A stretch of 64,000 nucleotides of DNA from Octopus sinensis (lineage: Eukaryota), in NCBI RefSeq assembly GCF_006345805.1, contig NC_043003.1, forward strand, positions 95,170,001 to 95,234,000. The letters run 5' to 3'. The first letter of the stretch is position 1; each line of letters starts with the position of its first letter. The position numbers and the translations under genes are program-made. The notes beneath the pieces are model-generated. The model was not told the DNA's origin, did not search any database, and saw only the letters and a list, made by a program, of their open reading frames with translations. Shown here one piece after another: positions 40,716-54,028 of the stretch.

Positions 40716-40937
40716 TTAGTAGAAATGCCACATCCAATAGATAATATTACTAAATATGAAAGCTACAGGGAAGATAATTTTGCAGTATTGATCAGCTTTG
40801 TTAATTCTTTTACCAACGTTTTTATTGTCAGCAGCAGCAGCAGTTATTTTGTATTCATCAACATCTCTTTCTGTAACCATTCCGTTTGAAAAGCTATCTT
40901 CTTTGTAACTCGTGTTTGCATGTTCACTCATTGACAA
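40716..40937 (-). CDS. Cys-loop ligand-gated ion channel (GABA-A/GlyR family), last exon (M3-M4 loop and M4)
   Basis: TTCCAG|TTG, phase 0; ..INKADQYCKIIFPVAFIFSNIIYWMWHFY*; minus-strand AATAAA at 40591-40596. Confidence 0.92.
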   Translation of the reverse strand: MSMSEHANTSYKEDSFSNGMVTERDVDEYKITAAAADNKNVGKRINKADQYCKIIFPVAFIFSNIIYWMWHFY

Positions 40938-41879
40938 CTGGAATAATAATAACAACAACAGCAATAAAAACGAATTAAAGATTTATAAAAATATCCTAGG
41001 TTTAGACATTAAAATGTTTTCTAGAAGGCGAAGGTACAACAAATTGTGATTTGTAGTTGAGTTTAGAGACAACCGAATTAATGGCCCTTGATTGGATTTT
41101 GTCCACCACATTTATTGGATACGTGATTGTTTTCCTTGTCTCTTTTTGACAGACAATAAAATTCAGTATCAAAATATACGTTTCCCTTTTAGTGACTCCA
41201 AATTAATTGATAGTCATCATCATCATCATCATTGTATTCCCCTTCCTCTTCCCATCCCCCTCACTTCTACCGTATTCTCTTTCCACTATAATCACATCGT
41301 AGTATATATTTCTCTCAGGACTGACAGTTTCCTTAGATCACTCGTCCTTTCTATCAATACATCTGCCTCTCCATTCGCTGATCCTTGTAATATGAAACTC
41401 ATTTTCCACAAACAGAACAAATCAAACTAGAACATGAAACCGTATCACTCCAATTTTTATATATTTAATACAAAATTATCTTTGGGATTTTTATTTCTCA
41501 ATTAAAAAGCACAAAGAATGCGTGTAATGACGGCTGTTTCGGATAGGACGACATGGAAGAGATACTCCCATAACTTTCCCAGGAATAGTAAGCAGAGAAA
41601 ATGGATGGTTGGATGGATAGAACTACTCTTTAGCATTCAGATTACTCTGCCAAATGTAATGCTCATTTATTCATGTTGTTTTGAATTAATCAAGCATTAT
41701 CTTGTAGCTTCGAAATTCTGATAACGAGACTGCTTCTTAGAATAACTTTGCAGGGCAGTTATGAGGGACCTGTCTGGCCAATTTTAACATAAAACATAAA
41801 ACAATAGTTTGGATCAGATATACTCGGTTTAAATGCTAAAGAGTTACAAATCAAAATTTAGATTCAAATTTTTACTTAC

Positions 41880-42244
41880 TGAATCGTGTGATGTTTGGTT
41901 GTTAGTAGTTTTTAATTTTGCATTGGAAGTTCTTGAATGGTTAAGTAAAATGAATTCGATTAAGGCTGAGAAGACGAAGATGAGACATATAATAAGCCAT
42001 ATATCAATTCCAAGCATTCCTGTTGCAAAATAGTGTTTTGCTGGATGTAGGCTGGAGTTATGAGTTATAAGAGTGAGTAAGGTGATCAAACCGAGGGACA
42101 TACGGGCTGCAGTGCTTTCAGTGTCAATCCAAAATGACAAACCGCCAACAACCACTAAGATAGTGCTGGTAAAATAGATTGCCAAGATTTGTAAACTGAA
42201 TTTCCTTTGTAAATGCAAAGAGGCTTCAATCTGGGACCAGTTCT
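41880..42244 (-). CDS. Cys-loop channel exon: loop C end and M1-M3
   Basis: TTTCAG|AG..TCA|GTAAGT, 365 nt; [77 protein letters not shown]. Confidence 0.95.
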
Positions 42245-42829
42245 CTGAAAAAGGACATTAGTATAATATATATATATATATATATATATATATATATATA
42301 TATATATATATATATATATATATATATATATATATATATACATACATACATACATACATACATACATACATACATACATACATACATATATATTAAAATA
42401 AGCAACAAGGATATCCAAAGGTAGTGTAGTACAATCGTTTCATGCTACTTCATTTAATTAAACAATGTAAGTATTACATCACTTTTAAAATGTAGAGCAA
42501 TCTTCAGCCACATATGGAATTTTAAAAAAATTAAATTGACAATGTTCATTTTTATACTTATTCCATTTGCCAACATTACAAAGATGGTAGGTATATAGAC
42601 AGAGAGGTGAATTCCGTCAGTAAAAACATGTATATATATATATATATATATATATATATATATATATATGTGTGTGTGTGTGTGTGTGTGTATATATATA
42701 TTATATATATATATATATATATATAATATATATATATATATATATATATATATATATATATATGTGTGTGTGTGTGTGTGCATGCGTGCACGGGCTTGTG
42801 TGCATGCATATGTGTGTATATATATAATT

Positions 42830-43210
42830 TCTGTCTCCGTTTATTTCTCTGTGTTCCTTTCTGTTGAAGAGCGTAGGCGCGAAACTTAAAAGACTTTCTC
42901 TCCTTTCCGAGCGTCAAACTAAACACCCGCTTGTTGTTTATACACCTGTCTTCTTTTGTTCTTCAGTAAATTTCAACCATATATATATATATATATATAT
43001 ATATATAAACAATTGCAGCGTGGAAGATGTTTGTAAGTCATTTAAGAAACACACAAAAGCCGTTCGATTCACTCCAACATTTAAGTTTAATTTGTCAAAA
43101 TATTTTCGTCGCTTTAAGACCGCGACCTGTTCACTGACAAAAATCCGTAGCACGCTGCAATTGTTTTCGTTTCAGCACACGATCTCAGATCAAATCACTT
43201 GCTATGCAAG
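42830..43210 (+). mobile_element. Penelope-type terminal repeat family (copies also about 47590-47770 + and 50290-50510 -)
   Basis: Shared GAAGAGCGTAGGCTCGAAAC-like core in three copies; Penelope assignment is inferred from the hammerhead-like motif. Confidence 0.5.
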
Positions 43211-43499
43211 TACATCTCCTATATATATATATATATATATATATATATATTCAATAATGCTACCCTTATATTGATTAATTAATATATATATATATATATA
43301 TATATATATATATATATACATACATATGTAAGTGTGTGTGTATGTGTGTGAAGATAGATATAGATACATGCATGCATACATATATTTATACATAGAAGCA
43401 TACATATACATACATACGTACGTACAGGCAAACAGACAGAGCAGATCTAATTTTTTTTGTGGGACAAGGTACATAAGTCGTGCAATGTAGAGGTAAGCT

Positions 43500-43780
43500 G
43501 CCCAGCAGATGTGAGTGTACAAAAAAAATCTCCAGGAAAAAGAATGCATTTATGACGAATTAATGCGGAACTTACAGCTCTTGTACCCTGAATATACGTT
43601 CTCATTTGTAGCCATCATCATATGTGCACTAGATTATGTGCCTACAGAGTTACACCAAGCCCTAGAAATATTAGGTTTTTCAAAGAAAGAGCAATAGAAA
43701 CTGATGCAGATTCTACGAATCCAAACTATTAGTGACTCAGTGACGATTTGTAAGACATTCCAAATATTCTTTGTCTGAGA
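43500..43780 (+). mobile_element. 3' end relic of an RLE-type LINE
   Basis: YDELMRNLQLLYPEYTFSFVAIIICALDYVP..ICKTF. Confidence 0.55.
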
Positions 43781-44039
43781 TTCTTTTCGTGAATTGATGC
43801 CCACACCTGAGTGTGTGCATCAATTGTTCAACCAACCCACAAACTCAACCACATGTTTACAAACACCAGGAAATCTCTTTACTCGAAAAGTCTTGTCGCT
43901 TTGTTAGCGACCATCCATCCATGCATGCATGCATGCATCCATCCATCCATTCATCCATCCATCCATACATCCACATACATACTTACATACATTCATGCAT
44001 ACATACATACATACGTACGTACGTACTTATATTCATTCA

Positions 44040-51772: not shown

Positions 51773-51994
51773 CTAGTGGTGAGAAAAGAGAAATAGAATT
51801 CTAGGAGAAATATAAATAAATGTTCCATGAAATGGGATAATGGAGTTTGGGGAATGGAAACCATAGAACCATTTCAATTTATACTTAGAAACGATATATG
51901 TGTATGCGTGTATGTGTGTGCGTGTGTGTGTATATGTTTGTGTGTGTGTATATATATATATATATATATATATATATATATATATAATAATGAA

Positions 51995-52620
51995 TGAATA
52001 CGAGCACATACCTTTATTGAACTATATGTTTCCCATTTTGTGCCACTACCTTTCGCTACCTTTGAGACATCTTCATGATCCCACCCTCCTAGAACTTGGC
52101 ATCTTTCTGGGTCATGAACTGGTCTAAGTGGTTTTTACACGCTTTTAAAGAATCGAAGTTCTTCGCATAAAGAGAATTTTGCAGTGATCGTAATAAATGA
52201 TAATCCAAAGGTACGGAGGGTAGAGTAGAACATCCCACCCAAACTGCTTCGAAACGTGCGGTCTAGCGTTGTCTGTAAGACGGCACCCTTTCGGTTGGCC
52301 AATTCTGGACTTTTTGCCTCAATTGCCTGGACGTTTTTCTTCAATTGCCTCCTTTAATCAGCCTAATCGGGAACAATGAAAGTCTGAGATTGGAAGGGCA
52401 TTGTGTATTACGGACTATTTCTACAAAAGCAGGCGTTAAATTAACGTCGGCTTTTGTGGAAATAGTCCTTAATACACAATACCCTTCCAATCTCATCAGA
52501 TACAGACCAGCTTCTGGAGAGATTGAAGGTGTTTCAACTCGTTTTACACAGGACCTTTCTCATTTTATGTTGTAAATAATCCATTTCTCATCACACGTGA
52601 TCATTATTTTCAAAAATGGG
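51995..52620 (-). mobile_element. Mariner transposase 3' relic
   Basis: PELANRKGAV..DNARPH..GWDVL.YPPY..DYHLLRSLQNSL with deletions. Confidence 0.8.
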
Positions 52621-53289
52621 TAATTTTTGTTTTGAGCAGAGACTCATCGATGGAAATGTGCTCTATTAAGTTTTTTTTTCCTGTTAAGTTATGAGGCACT
52701 CAAACGTCAAAGTAATTCACGTAACCAGATGTTTTTAAATGCTTTATAGCGCCCAAAACTAGTTGTGTGTGTATGTATGTATATATATGTGTGTATGCGT
52801 GTGTATTGATGCATATGCGCGCGCGTATTTGTGCATGTTTTTATCATAGAGGTAGATAGATAGGAAGTAGGCTTCCGCATAATTTCCGTCTATTAAATTC
52901 TAATCAGACGGTATTGTGATTAGAATTTGCTCACAAGAAGAAATACTCCTCCCGTGTAACATCTGTCTTACTCAGGATGACACTTACCAACGGTATCACG
53001 ACTATGTTTGTTTCTACTTGGTCCTAATACTTTTGTATGCTAGTAAAATCTGTTACCCTTCTACTCTAACAACTCTGTATTCTACTTAAATTTGTCACAT
53101 GCTGTACAATGAAATATCATTGAGTCATGACCAAGGACGGTACAGTTTCAATCCTCAATTGAAGCTTTTTTTTGTGTGTGTTACATCCGCTTGCAACGAC
53201 TTAACTCTGCATGTTTCTTTACACATTTTCTTCTTAAAATACAGGGCTTTTGTGAGTAGTTAACAAGAAACATTTAATAACTTTTATAC

Positions 53290-53354
53290 CTTACTGGAAT
53301 CCATCATTCCAACAGCTTCAACATACACGTTCACAAAGACAACTGTAATATTTC
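53290..53354 (-). CDS. Cys-loop channel exon: beta1 strand
   Basis: CTTGCAG|GA..AAG|GTATAA, 65 nt, phase 1/0; GNITVVFVNVYVEAVGMMDSSK. Confidence 0.88.
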
Positions 53355-53629
53355 CTGCAAGAAAGCAAAATAGACTGTGTAAGAAATCATTTAATGAATG
53401 GAAAACATTGTGATAGTTTTTATTAATTTAATAATATAAAAGTCAACAACGCTAGTGTTGCGATCCAAAGAGAAACACTAAATATGGATCAGCACTTGGG
53501 AGAAGTAAGTCACAAAACTTCCTTTTTATTAGAGGAATTCATCGAGATAAGAGAAATGAAGAATAGAACATATCTCTGTTTTCTCAAAATCGGAAATGTT
53601 AATTTAAAAAAATCTTTTAGCCACGAGAA

Positions 53630-53696
53630 TTGGATGAAGATTTGTATATGGTCATGAGATTGCCTATCTCATGACCATATACAAAGCTTCATCCAA
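53630..53696. repeat. Near-perfect 67-nt hairpin
   Basis: 31-nt arms (30/31 complementary), 5-nt loop TGCCT. Confidence 0.9.
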
Positions 53697-53930
53697 GAGT
53701 AACCGAAGGAAGAGAAAAGGTATCCTCAAACGGAGTGGACTTCCCTAAAAGTATTCAAGATGCCAGTTGGTGGCGTTAATCTGTGTGAATGATTAAGTCT
53801 ACCATCCAGGTAAACCTAAGCGGAAGTTTAACTCGGAACAGACATTTTGAGTGAGATACGTGTTTTTTTTTTAAAAATGAGCCTCTTCAAGAAGTTGCCC
53901 TGGTACACTTACAAATATTCATACACTTAC

Positions 53931-54028
53931 CTGATTCTTTTTCAGGTCTGAAATAACGATTGTAACTATTTCCTTTGAGAACTTTCATTATCTCATGCCA
54001 TACTGAACTGTTGCTTTCGCCAGTACAC
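53931..54028 (-). CDS. Cys-loop channel exon: N-terminal helix
   Basis: CAACAG|G..CAG|GTAAGT, 98 nt, phase 2/1; CTGESNSSVWHEIMKVLKGNSYNRYFRPEKES (Y..x.RP motif). Confidence 0.88.

Follow-up and report, generated by a model that had tools for sequence, protein, structure and literature searches.

GlyR alpha1 channels that carry the D97R mutation open spontaneously. The mutant has been termed "overactive" (PMC3008964). SsCl/pHCl are anionic Cys-loop channels gated by alkaline pH, and the residues that sense pH are not conserved among the known pH-gated channels, SsCl included (PMC13065796). In Drosophila, a secretory epithelium owes its chloride conductance to secCl (PMC6522505). Together, these channels are precedents for anionic Cys-loop channels that are not gated by a transmitter.

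A 2025/26 preprint (bioRxiv 10.1101/2025.06.15.659772) describes an anionic group specific to cephalopods, labeled "PSG unknown 1 – inhibitory (protons?)", which its ML tree places as sister to platyhelminth GluCls. The group was found in the cuttlefish venom gland only, whereas glands of O. bimaculoides and Doryteuthis yielded none, and the preprint reports these venom-gland transcripts and the tree position only. We analyzed a 64,000-nucleotide stretch of the Octopus sinensis genome (the window) that harbors a gene of this clade. The gene and its clade are already on record in the RefSeq annotation and the preprint; compared with the latter, the octopus gene, its structure, the selection acting on it and its pocket residues are new here.

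Gene model

O. sinensis chromosome CM016865.1 matches the window at 100% identity. Seven GT/AG-bounded exons on the minus strand (positions 40716-54028) are exons 2-8 of an annotated gene, whose product XP_036360849.1/XP_036360850.1 (P0001; 428 aa) bears the RefSeq name "glycine receptor subunit beta-type 4-like". Our reconstructed model is identical to XP_036360849.1. The in-window exons sum to 1189 nt (the last base of codon 33, then 395 codons plus a stop) and have AG acceptors and GT donors throughout. The initial annotation, an intact gene with seven exons and about 395 stop-free codons, was thus accurate; its end coordinate, 54028, is the exact acceptor of exon 2. The signal peptide (MKRQENRTMETKQYATSLKWILITFNIFLHLPQ) comes from coding exon 1, ~19.7 kb upstream of exon 2 and ~9.8 kb outside the window.

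The first in-window exon, the second of eight coding exons (53931-54028; acceptor CAACAG/G, donor G/GTAAGT), has the last base of codon Q33 as its initial G and gives rise to the mature N-terminus and the alpha1 helix (CTGESNSSVWHEIMKVLKGNSYNRYFRPEKES; residues 33-66 of XP_036360849.1); its O. vulgaris counterpart is 100% identical. Exon 3 (53290-53354, 65 nt), the sole candidate combining a good polypyrimidine tract with phase, encodes the beta1 strand (GNITVVFVNVYVEAVGMMDSSK; residues 65-87). Exon 4 (51555-51772, 218 nt; 100% match to residues 88-160) encodes both loop D (VVTETW, 51737-51754) and loop A (WTPKLLL, 51641-51661), along with the greater part of loop E. Within exon 5 (48772-48854, 83 nt) are the Cys-loop CQKHINLFPLDGQIC (48791-48835) and IKIKS, with which loop B begins; exon 6 (47248-47385, 138 nt) completes loop B (FYYPVEE), encodes loop F and begins loop C (TEENTTQFG). 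Loop C is completed by exon 7 (41880-42244, 365 nt), which also encodes pre-M1, M1 (42126-42194), M2 (42045-42110), the M2-M3 loop and M3 (41937-42008). Exon 8 (40716-40937, 222 nt including the stop TAA at 40718-40716; 100% match to residues 356-428) comprises a short intracellular loop with the conserved motif MVTERDVDEYKI (40845-40880) and M4 (40719-40796). All these exons are on the minus strand.

Outside the coding sequence, an M4-like pseudo-exon (39985-40325, minus strand) duplicates the 3' portion of exon 8 in a split and decayed form. Its DNA alignment to exon 8 scores 70 (shuffles, 20±2.4), and it is 50% identical to residues 394-419 of XP_036360849.1 (tblastn). The pseudo-exon is present also in O. 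bimaculoides and O. vulgaris.

Fold and pore

The Pfam domains Neur_chan_LBD (1.4e-29) and Neur_chan_memb (1.5e-14), together with a C-x13-C Cys-loop containing FPLDGQIC, confirm the Cys-loop and M1-M4 recognized in the initial annotation, and the membership of the anion-channel branch (GABA-A/GlyR/GluCl-like) that it proposed is borne out. The solved structures that match best by sequence are GABA-A beta2 (1.7e-39), GlyR alpha1/2 (~1e-38) and GluCl (3.8e-34). The extracellular domain of the AlphaFold monomer (pLDDT 75-90; the transmembrane part is of low confidence, pLDDT 50-60) has GABA-A beta, GluCl and GlyR as top Foldseek matches (target TM-score ~0.8). Pore positions −2'/−1'/0' read A-A-R, as in the aligned GABA-A beta, and lack a −1' Glu; position 9' is Leu. 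Among homologues, 0' is Arg in 181/182 and 9' is Leu in 174/179. The pore is of the anion type and highly conserved, and the channel is probably anion-selective. The M1-M2/M2 stretch is 96% identical to that of Argonauta (M2, 23/24) and 83% to that of Sepia (M2, 20/24), the extracellular domain 59% and 41%, respectively. Octopus is 62% identical to Argonauta and, over the full length, 43-44% to Sepia esculenta.

Ligand pocket

Pocket positions follow GlyR numbering, which we take to be that of human GLRA1; column assignments in a HMMER alignment to GABA-A beta2 agree with it. Residue frequencies come from the top ~150 homologue representatives in a set of 1.84 billion proteins. In loop D, F63/R65 of GlyR alpha1 are replaced by V/T (among the best homologues, Arg in 107/148 and Thr in 3/148). 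Loop A has Lys in place of Asp (among the nearest homologues, Asp in 137/159 and Lys or Arg in 0/159). In loop B (KSFYY), the Glu at the GlyR E157 position is Lys, found in one further sequence only among the best homologues, and the position following the Phe is Gly/Ala/Ser in 142/163 of them. Loop C (TTQFGQNWSQ) lacks the Cys pair, and the complementary-face Arg of loop E is also lost. Three of ten canonical pocket positions are kept, versus 7-10 in 121/143 relatives. Each substitution that had been listed for loops D, A, B and C is therefore real and, by homologue counts, rare. The accompanying claim that the residues binding glycine, GABA or glutamate are lost also stands: the carboxylate and amine contacts are absent, and the changes are conserved across lineages.

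The electrostatics of the pocket are inverted: on the principal face, the loop A Asp and loop B Glu have become Lys/Arg, and on the complementary face neutral residues replace the Arg of loops D and E. The E157 position is positively charged in Octopus, Argonauta and Sepia (K/R/K), and WTPKL, KSFYY and TQFG are common to Octopus and Sepia despite 43% overall identity. The loop-A Asp position of Argonauta is Asn, not Lys, hence the charge inversion is not uniform. The aromatic triplet F-Y-Y of loop B is retained, as is F232 of loop C in Octopus and Sepia (Leu in Argonauta).

Two non-canonical pocket faces are what one would expect of a subunit contributing no agonist site. The protein could be an accessory or structural subunit that co-assembles with canonical cephalopod GluCl/GABA-type subunits and alters their gating, trafficking or pharmacology, like GlyR beta or GABA-A gamma/delta/epsilon, with a classical transmitter acting at the partner interface. 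The much higher conservation of the pore and M1-M3 relative to the extracellular domain fits a constraint on co-assembly or permeation, A-A-R is the pore motif of heteromer-forming GABA-A beta subunits, and DopC2 and AChRB2/3 gave no current alone in an octopus LGIC screen (bioRxiv 10.1101/2025.04.02.646353). However, the pocket loops are not drifting freely, given the motifs shared by Octopus and Sepia and the charge kept at the E157 position, and a neighboring paralogue is absent (10-kb flanks, four species). We regard the accessory role as rather doubtful.

It appears improbable that a classical transmitter (glutamate, GABA, glycine, an amine, histamine or ACh) still gates the channel via a re-arranged binding mode. 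Since F-Y-Y and F232 are retained, a cation-pi box could persist; the published ML tree sets the group beside platyhelminth GluCls, and there have been many ligand switches among invertebrate anionic LGICs (characterized channels in 10.1101/2025.04.02.646353, supplement 2). Yet the amine-contacting Glu is now Lys or Arg, the loop-A Asp and both carboxylate-holding Arg of the complementary face are lost, and only 3/10 canonical positions remain.

Phylogeny, copy number and expression

Among the nearest homologues listed, the best non-cephalopod identity is 26-33%. NJ bootstrap analysis recovered a cephalopod-only clade on a long branch (monophyly 100/100) with no sister group above 17%, and did not reproduce the platyhelminth-GluCl placement. 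The gene is, as had been suggested, an orphan that falls in no characterized subfamily. The clade members seen so far come from coleoid cephalopods only (Octopus, Argonauta, cuttlefishes). A tandem expansion, considered in the initial annotation, was not found: the gene is single-copy, and neither the window nor the 10-kb flanks in four species contain a tandem paralogue.

Logan assemblies of the full-length Sepia esculenta mRNA occur in 73 blocks, and two of these runs were traced to published larval RNA-seq studies. The Ascarosepion bandense orthologue (424 aa) comes from posterior-salivary-gland (venom) transcriptomes (10.1101/2025.06.15.659772, supplement); it is 94% identical to the S. 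esculenta orthologue (P0004) and carries WTPKL and KSFYY. No Logan transcript contigs carrying XP_036360849.1 were found for octopus. The expression evidence located covers the cuttlefish posterior salivary gland and whole larvae; sensory expression, in suckers or skin, was not found.

These data bear on a further possibility, raised in the initial annotation: the gene may encode a chemosensory receptor that detects environmental molecules, repurposed within the anion branch independently of the chemotactile receptors that suckers derive from the nicotinic branch. Lineage restriction, fast evolution (43% Octopus-Sepia, 62% Octopus-Argonauta) and a remodeled orthosteric pocket agree with it, and the chemotactile receptors are a precedent in the same animals. 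But those receptors are an expanded family, whereas this gene is single-copy; its located expression is not in a sensory epithelium; an anion channel hyperpolarizes or shunts most cells and would be an unusual primary transducer; and M2 is conserved as in a housekeeping channel. The chemoreceptor analogy is speculative because neither tandem expansion nor sensory expression was found, and we hold it to be quite improbable.

Conservation and selection

All eight exons are intact in O. vulgaris (identical splice sites, 4 aa differences) and in Argonauta hians (ORF and splice sites conserved; rebuilt model of 412 aa). The dN/dS ratio is 0.14 versus Argonauta, where dS is near saturation (1.6), and 0.33 versus O. 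bimaculoides, a comparison that rests on 23 substitutions. The gene is under purifying selection and functional constraint. Truncated models are on deposit for both O. vulgaris and O. bimaculoides; the exon that the latter lacks coincides with an N-run, and these truncations are annotation or assembly artifacts. A decaying, non-functional gene whose odd pocket reflects relaxed constraint, to which the dN/dS of 0.33 (high for a receptor), the truncated models and the failure to find octopus transcripts might point, is largely refuted and deserves hardly any credence, as the truncations are artifactual, Argonauta retains the ORF and every splice site, the deeper comparison gives a dN/dS of 0.14, M2 is almost invariant in three lineages and the cuttlefish orthologue is transcribed as a full-length mRNA.

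Proposed function

Overall, we suggest, with a probability of roughly 0.6, that the locus is a single-copy functional gene for an anion-selective Cys-loop subunit with non-canonical gating, belonging to the fast-evolving coleoid lineage "PSG unknown 1". The subunit would assemble into a chloride-permeable channel that, judging from its pocket residues, is unlikely to bind glycine, GABA or glutamate canonically. Gating might be achieved by another stimulus, e.g. a pH change or a small, possibly anionic ligand that has no cationic amine; alternatively, the channel may open with little need for agonist. In cuttlefish at least, it may act in a secretory gland, the posterior salivary or venom gland, besides, or in place of, synapses. 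An accessory-subunit role or a pH-gated role stands equally with the reading of the gene as a receptor for a new ligand.

Comparison with known systems

The octopus protein shares its fold, Cys-loop and four transmembrane helices with GlyR alpha/beta and GABA-A beta, which are its best sequence and structure matches. Its M2 is likewise of the anion type, with A-A-R identical to GABA-A beta, 9' Leu and 15' Asn, and the exon-phase pattern is similar to that of GlyR/GABA-A genes. However, it is only 22-30% identical to vertebrate GlyR/GABA-A beta; it lacks R65, R119, E157, D97 and the loop-C disulfide of GlyR, and Y97, E155, F200 and Y205 of GABA-A beta. Its M2-M3 loop has one extra residue and no LPK(V/I)SY(V/I)KA motif, and 6' is Ile instead of Thr. 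GluCls (C. elegans 3RHW, molluscan and platyhelminth) belong to the same anionic branch (PDB E-value 3.8e-34), and GluCl is the automated name of the O. bimaculoides and O. vulgaris orthologues, but the loop-C disulfide and the loop-D/E Arg that hold the glutamate carboxylates are missing here.

The chemotactile receptors of octopus and squid are likewise cephalopod-restricted, fast-evolving Cys-loop subunits with remodeled orthosteric sites; they are nicotinic (cationic), tandemly expanded and found in suckers, unlike the present anionic, single-copy gene with no sensory expression found. SsCl/insect pHCl, Alvinella Alv-a1-pHCl and the Drosophila secCl/CG7589 group are anionic pLGICs without a classical transmitter, some of them secretory-epithelial (PMC13065796, PMC6522505, PMC4938653). 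None came out as a supported sister of the octopus clade, and the likeness would be one of functional analogy, suggested by venom-gland expression and the "protons?" guess of the preprint. "PSG unknown 1" itself (10.1101/2025.06.15.659772) is the same clade as the octopus gene.

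Gene structure and locus

Exons of the receptor gene were delimited by six-frame inspection and splice-site enumeration on the minus strand of the window. Seven coding exons lie there: exon 2 (54028–53931, 98 nt), exon 3 (53354–53290, 65 nt), exon 4 (51772–51555, 218 nt), exon 5 (48854–48772, 83 nt), exon 6 (47385–47248, 138 nt), exon 7 (42244–41880, 365 nt) and exon 8 (40937–40716, 222 nt including the stop). All their junctions are AG/GT with consistent phases, and together they comprise 1189 nt, that is, one leading base, 395 codons and the stop. The initial annotation had estimated about 395 stop-free codons, in agreement with this model, and its end coordinate, 54028, is exactly the acceptor of the first in-window exon. 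The window is 100% identical to O. sinensis chromosome CM016865.1 (GCA_006345805.1), and the in-window exons are exons 2–8 of the 428-aa protein XP_036360849.1/XP_036360850.1 (P0001, the O. sinensis product of the gene), named 'glycine receptor subunit beta-type 4-like'. Coding exon 1, with the signal peptide MKRQENRTMETKQYATSLKWILITFNIFLHLPQ, is located ~19.7 kb upstream of exon 2, ~9.8 kb past the window end; its Argonauta counterpart aligns in DNA, donor site included.

An ATG at 54099, in intron 1 and in frame with exon 2, was rejected as the start: it opens a 419-aa ORF that lacks any signal peptide, and the annotated protein starts at the distant exon 1. Adjoining the exon 2 acceptor, another frame of window 54029–54110 (minus strand) resembles a signal peptide, KKKFLRGEFILIVLLLFAFISTGVLA. 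The stretch upstream of exon 2 aligns to exon 1 no better than chance (DNA score 16 versus 17±3 for shuffles), and its readings as a degenerate exon 1 copy or as a signal peptide with a frameshift were dropped; we treat the signal-peptide-like frame as a chance resemblance that could mislead gene finders. Downstream of the receptor gene lies a plus-strand call for a UcrQ-family protein (PF02939, cytochrome bc1 subunit 8, 82 aa) at ~30716–33899 and below (49987–53170 of genomic locus L001). UcrQ is the downstream neighbour of the receptor gene in all four species (O. sinensis, O. bimaculoides, O. vulgaris and Argonauta), and this synteny supports the orthology of the receptor genes.

The 3' half of the last coding exon has a decayed duplicate, split in two, at 39985–40325 on the minus strand, 400–700 nt downstream of the stop (DNA alignment to the last exon 70 versus 20±2.4 for shuffles). 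The duplicate's first, M4-like piece reads '...NEADRYCRLIDPLAFVFTN' at ~40253–40318 and its second 'NIMYWMWHF*' at ~39990–40030, both on the minus strand. With tblastn the M4-like half is found at 50% in O. vulgaris and more weakly in O. bimaculoides (44%, E 0.05). Tandem arrays of a ~175–185-bp unit with a tRNA-like core (…GTTCAAATTCCGCCGAGGTCGAC…) are present at 62813–63657 (4.7 copies) and 25292–25653 (2 copies), and related pieces occur near 663, 23357, 34397 and 60164; the unit is probably an octopus SINE, and ARAGORN called no tRNA in the window. Introns of the receptor gene carry dense microsatellites at 42260–44900, 46840–46960, 47790–47900 and 48590–48700, with TA, CA and TACA runs and (CATA)n at 43912–44268, which produce numerous long but spurious ORFs, rich in Y/I/C/M/V, on both strands. 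Elsewhere in the window are (AG)n at 11822–12105 and (TCT)n at 4712–4831.

Fold, family and pore

Sequence and model comparisons place the gene product in the Cys-loop (pentameric ligand-gated ion channel) superfamily. Pfam matches to the ligand-binding (PF02931, 1.4e-29) and transmembrane (PF02932, 1.5e-14) domains both exceed cut-offs. The Cys-loop, CQKHINLFPLDGQIC (residues 167–181, window 48791–48835), has C-x13-C spacing and the FPxDxQxC signature, which is also kept in Argonauta and Sepia. An AlphaFold2 model, built from a shallow alignment of 13 sequences (pLDDT 75–90 in the extracellular part, weaker in the transmembrane domain), has a beta-rich extracellular domain followed by four helices. 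Foldseek matched it to GABA-A beta2/3, GluCl and GlyR alpha2 at a target-normalised TM-score of ~0.8 and 22–24% identity. The best solved relatives by sequence are GABA-A beta2 (1.7e-39), GlyR alpha1/alpha2 (~1e-38) and GluCl alpha (3.8e-34); all 60 PDB matches listed and all 50 Foldseek matches are anionic subunits (GABA-A, GlyR, GluCl).

The M2 mouth reads T-A-A-R-M-S-L-G, with A-A-R at −2'/−1'/0', matching GABA-A beta2 'saarvalg' in the HMMER alignment and lacking the −1' Glu of cation channels. Ala at −1' and Arg at 0' are the rule among homologues (161/182 and 181/182); Ala at −2' is found in 22 of 182, Pro in 154. M2 has Leu at 9', Asn at 15' and, where most relatives carry Thr, Ile at 6'. 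The pore is of the anion type and falls in the anion-selective branch, so far as selectivity can be predicted from these residues.

A remodelled binding pocket

Pocket positions are given in GlyR alpha1 numbering, which we take to apply here and with which the HMMER alignment to GABA-A beta2 is consistent. In loop D, F63 and R65 are replaced by V94 and T96 in octopus. Loop A changes from W-K-P-D-L-F-F to W-T-P-K-L-L-L (D97 to K128, F99 to L130) and loop B from E-S-F-G-Y to K-S-F-Y-Y (E157 to K186, G160 to Y189). R119 of loop E becomes V148, and C198 and C209 of loop C become E227 and Q238. S129 is retained in Octopus, as is F159 of the aromatic box, of which Y202 is replaced by Gln and F207 by Trp (Val in Sepia). 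At the R65 position Octopus and Argonauta have Thr and Sepia has Ser; the E157 position is Lys, Arg and Lys in Octopus, Argonauta and Sepia, respectively, and the WxPD Asp position Lys, Asn and Lys.

The rarity of these states was gauged on ~150 best representatives from 1.84 billion proteins scanned exhaustively with HMMER. Among these best homologues, Asp fills the loop-A position in 137 of 159 (Lys or Arg in 0/159), Arg fills the loop-D position in 107 of 148, and Gly, Ala or Ser follows the loop-B Phe in 142 of 163. Lys at the loop-B Glu position occurs in just one other sequence among the ~150. The cephalopod proteins keep 3 of 10 canonical pocket positions; 7–10 are kept by 121 of 143 relatives, and just one relative goes down to 3. 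Loss of the loop-C disulfide (no Cys is found in octopus loop C) is unremarkable alone, because about half of the relatives also do without it, with Cys at the C209 position in only 92 of 176 homologues. The net effect of the substitutions is to invert the pocket electrostatics, the principal face passing from acidic to basic and the complementary face from basic to neutral.

We compared the pocket with those of the characterised anionic receptors. From the glycine receptor, the carboxylate-binding R65 and R119, the amine-binding E157 and the C198–C209 disulfide are all absent. On the principal face of GABA-A beta (HMMER versus beta2), Y97, E155, Y157, F200, T202 and Y205 are replaced by Leu, Lys, Phe, Thr, Phe and Asn, and the complementary-face F64/R66 of loop D by V/T. 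GluCl has a loop-C Cys pair and arginines in loops D and E, which bind the glutamate carboxylates (3RIF structure); the octopus protein has no Cys pair and Thr and Val instead of the arginines. Judged by residues, it lacks determinants of glycine-, GABA- and glutamate-gated receptors and the WxPD Asp motif alike.

One non-cephalopod homologue (P0028, 424 aa, 29% identity) is the sole such protein among the ~150 best relatives with the loop-B Lys; its loop-D Arg position holds Thr. A similar pocket change may have arisen in it independently.

Orthologues and constraint

In O. vulgaris the gene retains all eight exons with intact splice sites, and differs at 7 nucleotides and 4 amino acids. The deposited O. 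vulgaris protein CAI9726102.1 (300 aa) is not a true model: it is mis-spliced, runs into the intron after exon 6 and omits exon 7 (O. vulgaris locus L012, 10001–40211). The Argonauta hians orthologue, rebuilt from the genome, is complete (412 aa), with the same eight exons and phases and GT/AG throughout. Six coding exons were found in O. bimaculoides. Exon 4 was not found there, but it does not count as a loss, as an N-run, an assembly gap, occupies its expected place (10841–11956 of locus L010); hence XP_014768139.1 (316 aa), which begins at a spurious exon, is truncated.

The dN/dS ratio is 0.14 versus Argonauta, at a dS of 1.6 that is near saturation, and 0.33 versus O. bimaculoides, from 13 non-synonymous and 10 synonymous differences. 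Identity to Argonauta and Sepia is highest in M1–M2/M2 (96% and 83%) and falls to 83% and 71% in M3, to 59% and 41% in the extracellular domain and to 38% and 30% in the intracellular loop. The Cys-loop and loop B rank among the best-conserved extracellular stretches versus both; loop A is well conserved versus Sepia but not versus Argonauta. WTPKL, KSFYY and TQFG are common to Octopus and cuttlefish despite 43% overall identity. The conserved pocket motifs and the basic residue at the E157 position indicate that the pocket was remodelled and then held, and is not eroding. By every sequence test available, the gene is functional.

Within the poorly conserved M3–M4 loop, Octopus, Argonauta and Sepia share the short motif MVTER(D/E)V.(E/K)YKI (residues 375–386, window 40845–40880, minus strand), which may serve in interaction or trafficking.

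Relatives, expression and prior knowledge

Among the best matches, identity to non-cephalopod proteins is 26–33% at most, and the nearest are a mixture of flatworm, hemichordate, nematode, echinoderm, nemertean, gastropod and chelicerate proteins automatically named 'GlyR alpha-like' or 'GluCl-like'. In a neighbour-joining (NJ) tree of 142 sequences, Octopus, Argonauta and Sepia are monophyletic in 100/100 bootstraps on a long stem (0.57). The same tree gave no supported sister group (none above 17% bootstrap), the candidates being pocket-divergent long branches. Among these, sea-spider and spider 'GLRA3-like' proteins (15%) were rejected as sister and treated as a case of long-branch attraction. 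The Sepia esculenta orthologue (P0004, 424 aa, 43% identity) falls in a 90% cluster that includes Acanthosepion pharaonis CAE1241720/CAE1241723, and a word-index protein search with it, aimed at squid and Nautilus members, returned at least two matches. Each Octopus species has one copy of the gene, and neither the window nor the 10-kb flanks of the gene in four species contain paralogue exons.

P0004 is encoded without introns on ~2.1-kb contigs in 73 Logan blocks, whose runs include SRR19578110 and SRR20545813; both appear in Sepia esculenta larval RNA-seq papers. Intron-free contigs from larval RNA-seq runs indicate that the cuttlefish gene is transcribed. The supplementary table of bioRxiv 10.1101/2025.06.15.659772 lists a 424-aa A. 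bandense protein with WTPKL and KSFYY as 'SG unknown 1 - inhibitory (protons?)'. This protein is 94% identical to P0004, with pocket and M2 motifs in common. Because of this identity, the 100/100 NJ support for the P0004–Octopus–Argonauta clade and the common motifs, the octopus gene can be assigned by sequence to the cephalopod anionic group 'PSG unknown 1' (PSG, posterior salivary or venom gland).

Another preprint (bioRxiv 10.1101/2025.04.02.646353) describes a systematic octopus LGIC survey, with 41 O. vulgaris subunits expressed and assayed against 18 ligands; the receptors it reports are DopC and AChRB only. The gene motifs and accessions had no match in the supplements of Courtney et al., where the alignment file is gapped and truncated and supplement 1 holds DopC and AChRB only. 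Literature searches by accession (XP_036360849, XP_036360850, XP_014768139 and CAI9726102) found no papers. Already on record, then, are an annotation of the gene and a published flag on its clade as unknown; new are the residue-level picture of a conserved, charge-inverted pocket, the evidence for constraint and the corrections to the orthologue models.

Possible modes of channel function

Overall, we suggest, at a probability of about 0.6, that the gene encodes a functional anion-channel subunit that is not canonically gated by glycine, GABA or glutamate. It would form, or contribute to, a chloride-permeable pentamer unable to bind the amine and carboxylate groups of these transmitters in the usual manner. 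Such a channel might be gated by a different stimulus, as are the alkaline-pH-gated SsCl/pHCl channels, whose pH sensor adjoins the classical site, is not conserved and offers no known conserved diagnostic residues (PMC13065796). Alternatively, it might depend only weakly on agonist. Mutation of GlyR alpha1 D97 to Arg breaks the intersubunit bond with R119, and the channels open spontaneously; the equivalents in the octopus protein are Lys and Val. The D97R mutant is named 'overactive' in the acknowledgement of one paper.

A third candidate mechanism, an accessory role in heteromers, is also a reading in its own right, which we consider rather unlikely. In that case, or if the subunit were a pH sensor, it would be one more among the many invertebrate orphan LGICs, such orphan subunits being common. 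It is improbable that one of the classical transmitters gates the channel after all.

Cephalopod chemotactile receptors show that Cys-loop channels can take new jobs. The initial annotation had described an orphan with a rewired pocket, a sound description (3 of 10 pocket positions kept, no sister above 17% bootstrap), and every substitution that it listed in loops D, A, B and C is present. Its further proposal, a new-ligand receptor paralleling the chemotactile receptors, draws no support from copy number or from the expression evidence found, and the tandem paralogues it suggested seeking beyond the window are absent from the 10-kb flanks in four species. A chemosensory role is very improbable, given a single-copy gene and expression found in the cuttlefish venom gland. 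A non-functional gene can be dismissed almost entirely, a pseudogene being ruled out by intact orthologues, dN/dS and M2 conservation.

A more specific version of the non-canonically gated channel is offered tentatively, as we hold it doubtful: a coleoid-specific anion channel with a polarity-swapped orthosteric site (principal face cationic, complementary face neutral), responding to a stimulus used by no characterised Cys-loop receptor and working in a secretory tissue, for instance the venom gland. Candidate stimuli would include small molecules that are anionic or have no amine, and extracellular pH. Were this true, it would be a second independent Cys-loop neofunctionalisation in cephalopods, from the inhibitory branch. 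More generally, the chemotactile-receptor story would gain another lineage-specific receptor, this one of the chloride-channel branch, if the pocket proves conserved but chemically inverted; pentameric channels could turn out to have a new class of agonist or mode of gating, with a possible bearing on the control of venom and salivary secretion. The practical yield is a set of corrected full-length models (O. sinensis, O. vulgaris and Argonauta), together with residues T96, K128, V148, K186 and Y189 for expression and mutagenesis.

Among known systems, the cephalopod chemotactile receptors belong to the nicotinic (cationic) branch, are tandemly expanded and are expressed in suckers, whereas the octopus gene belongs to the anionic branch and has one copy, its flanks free of paralogues in four species. 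Venom-gland expression of the cuttlefish orthologue recalls Drosophila secCl, an anionic Cys-loop channel that provides a secretory epithelium with its chloride conductance (PMC6522505).
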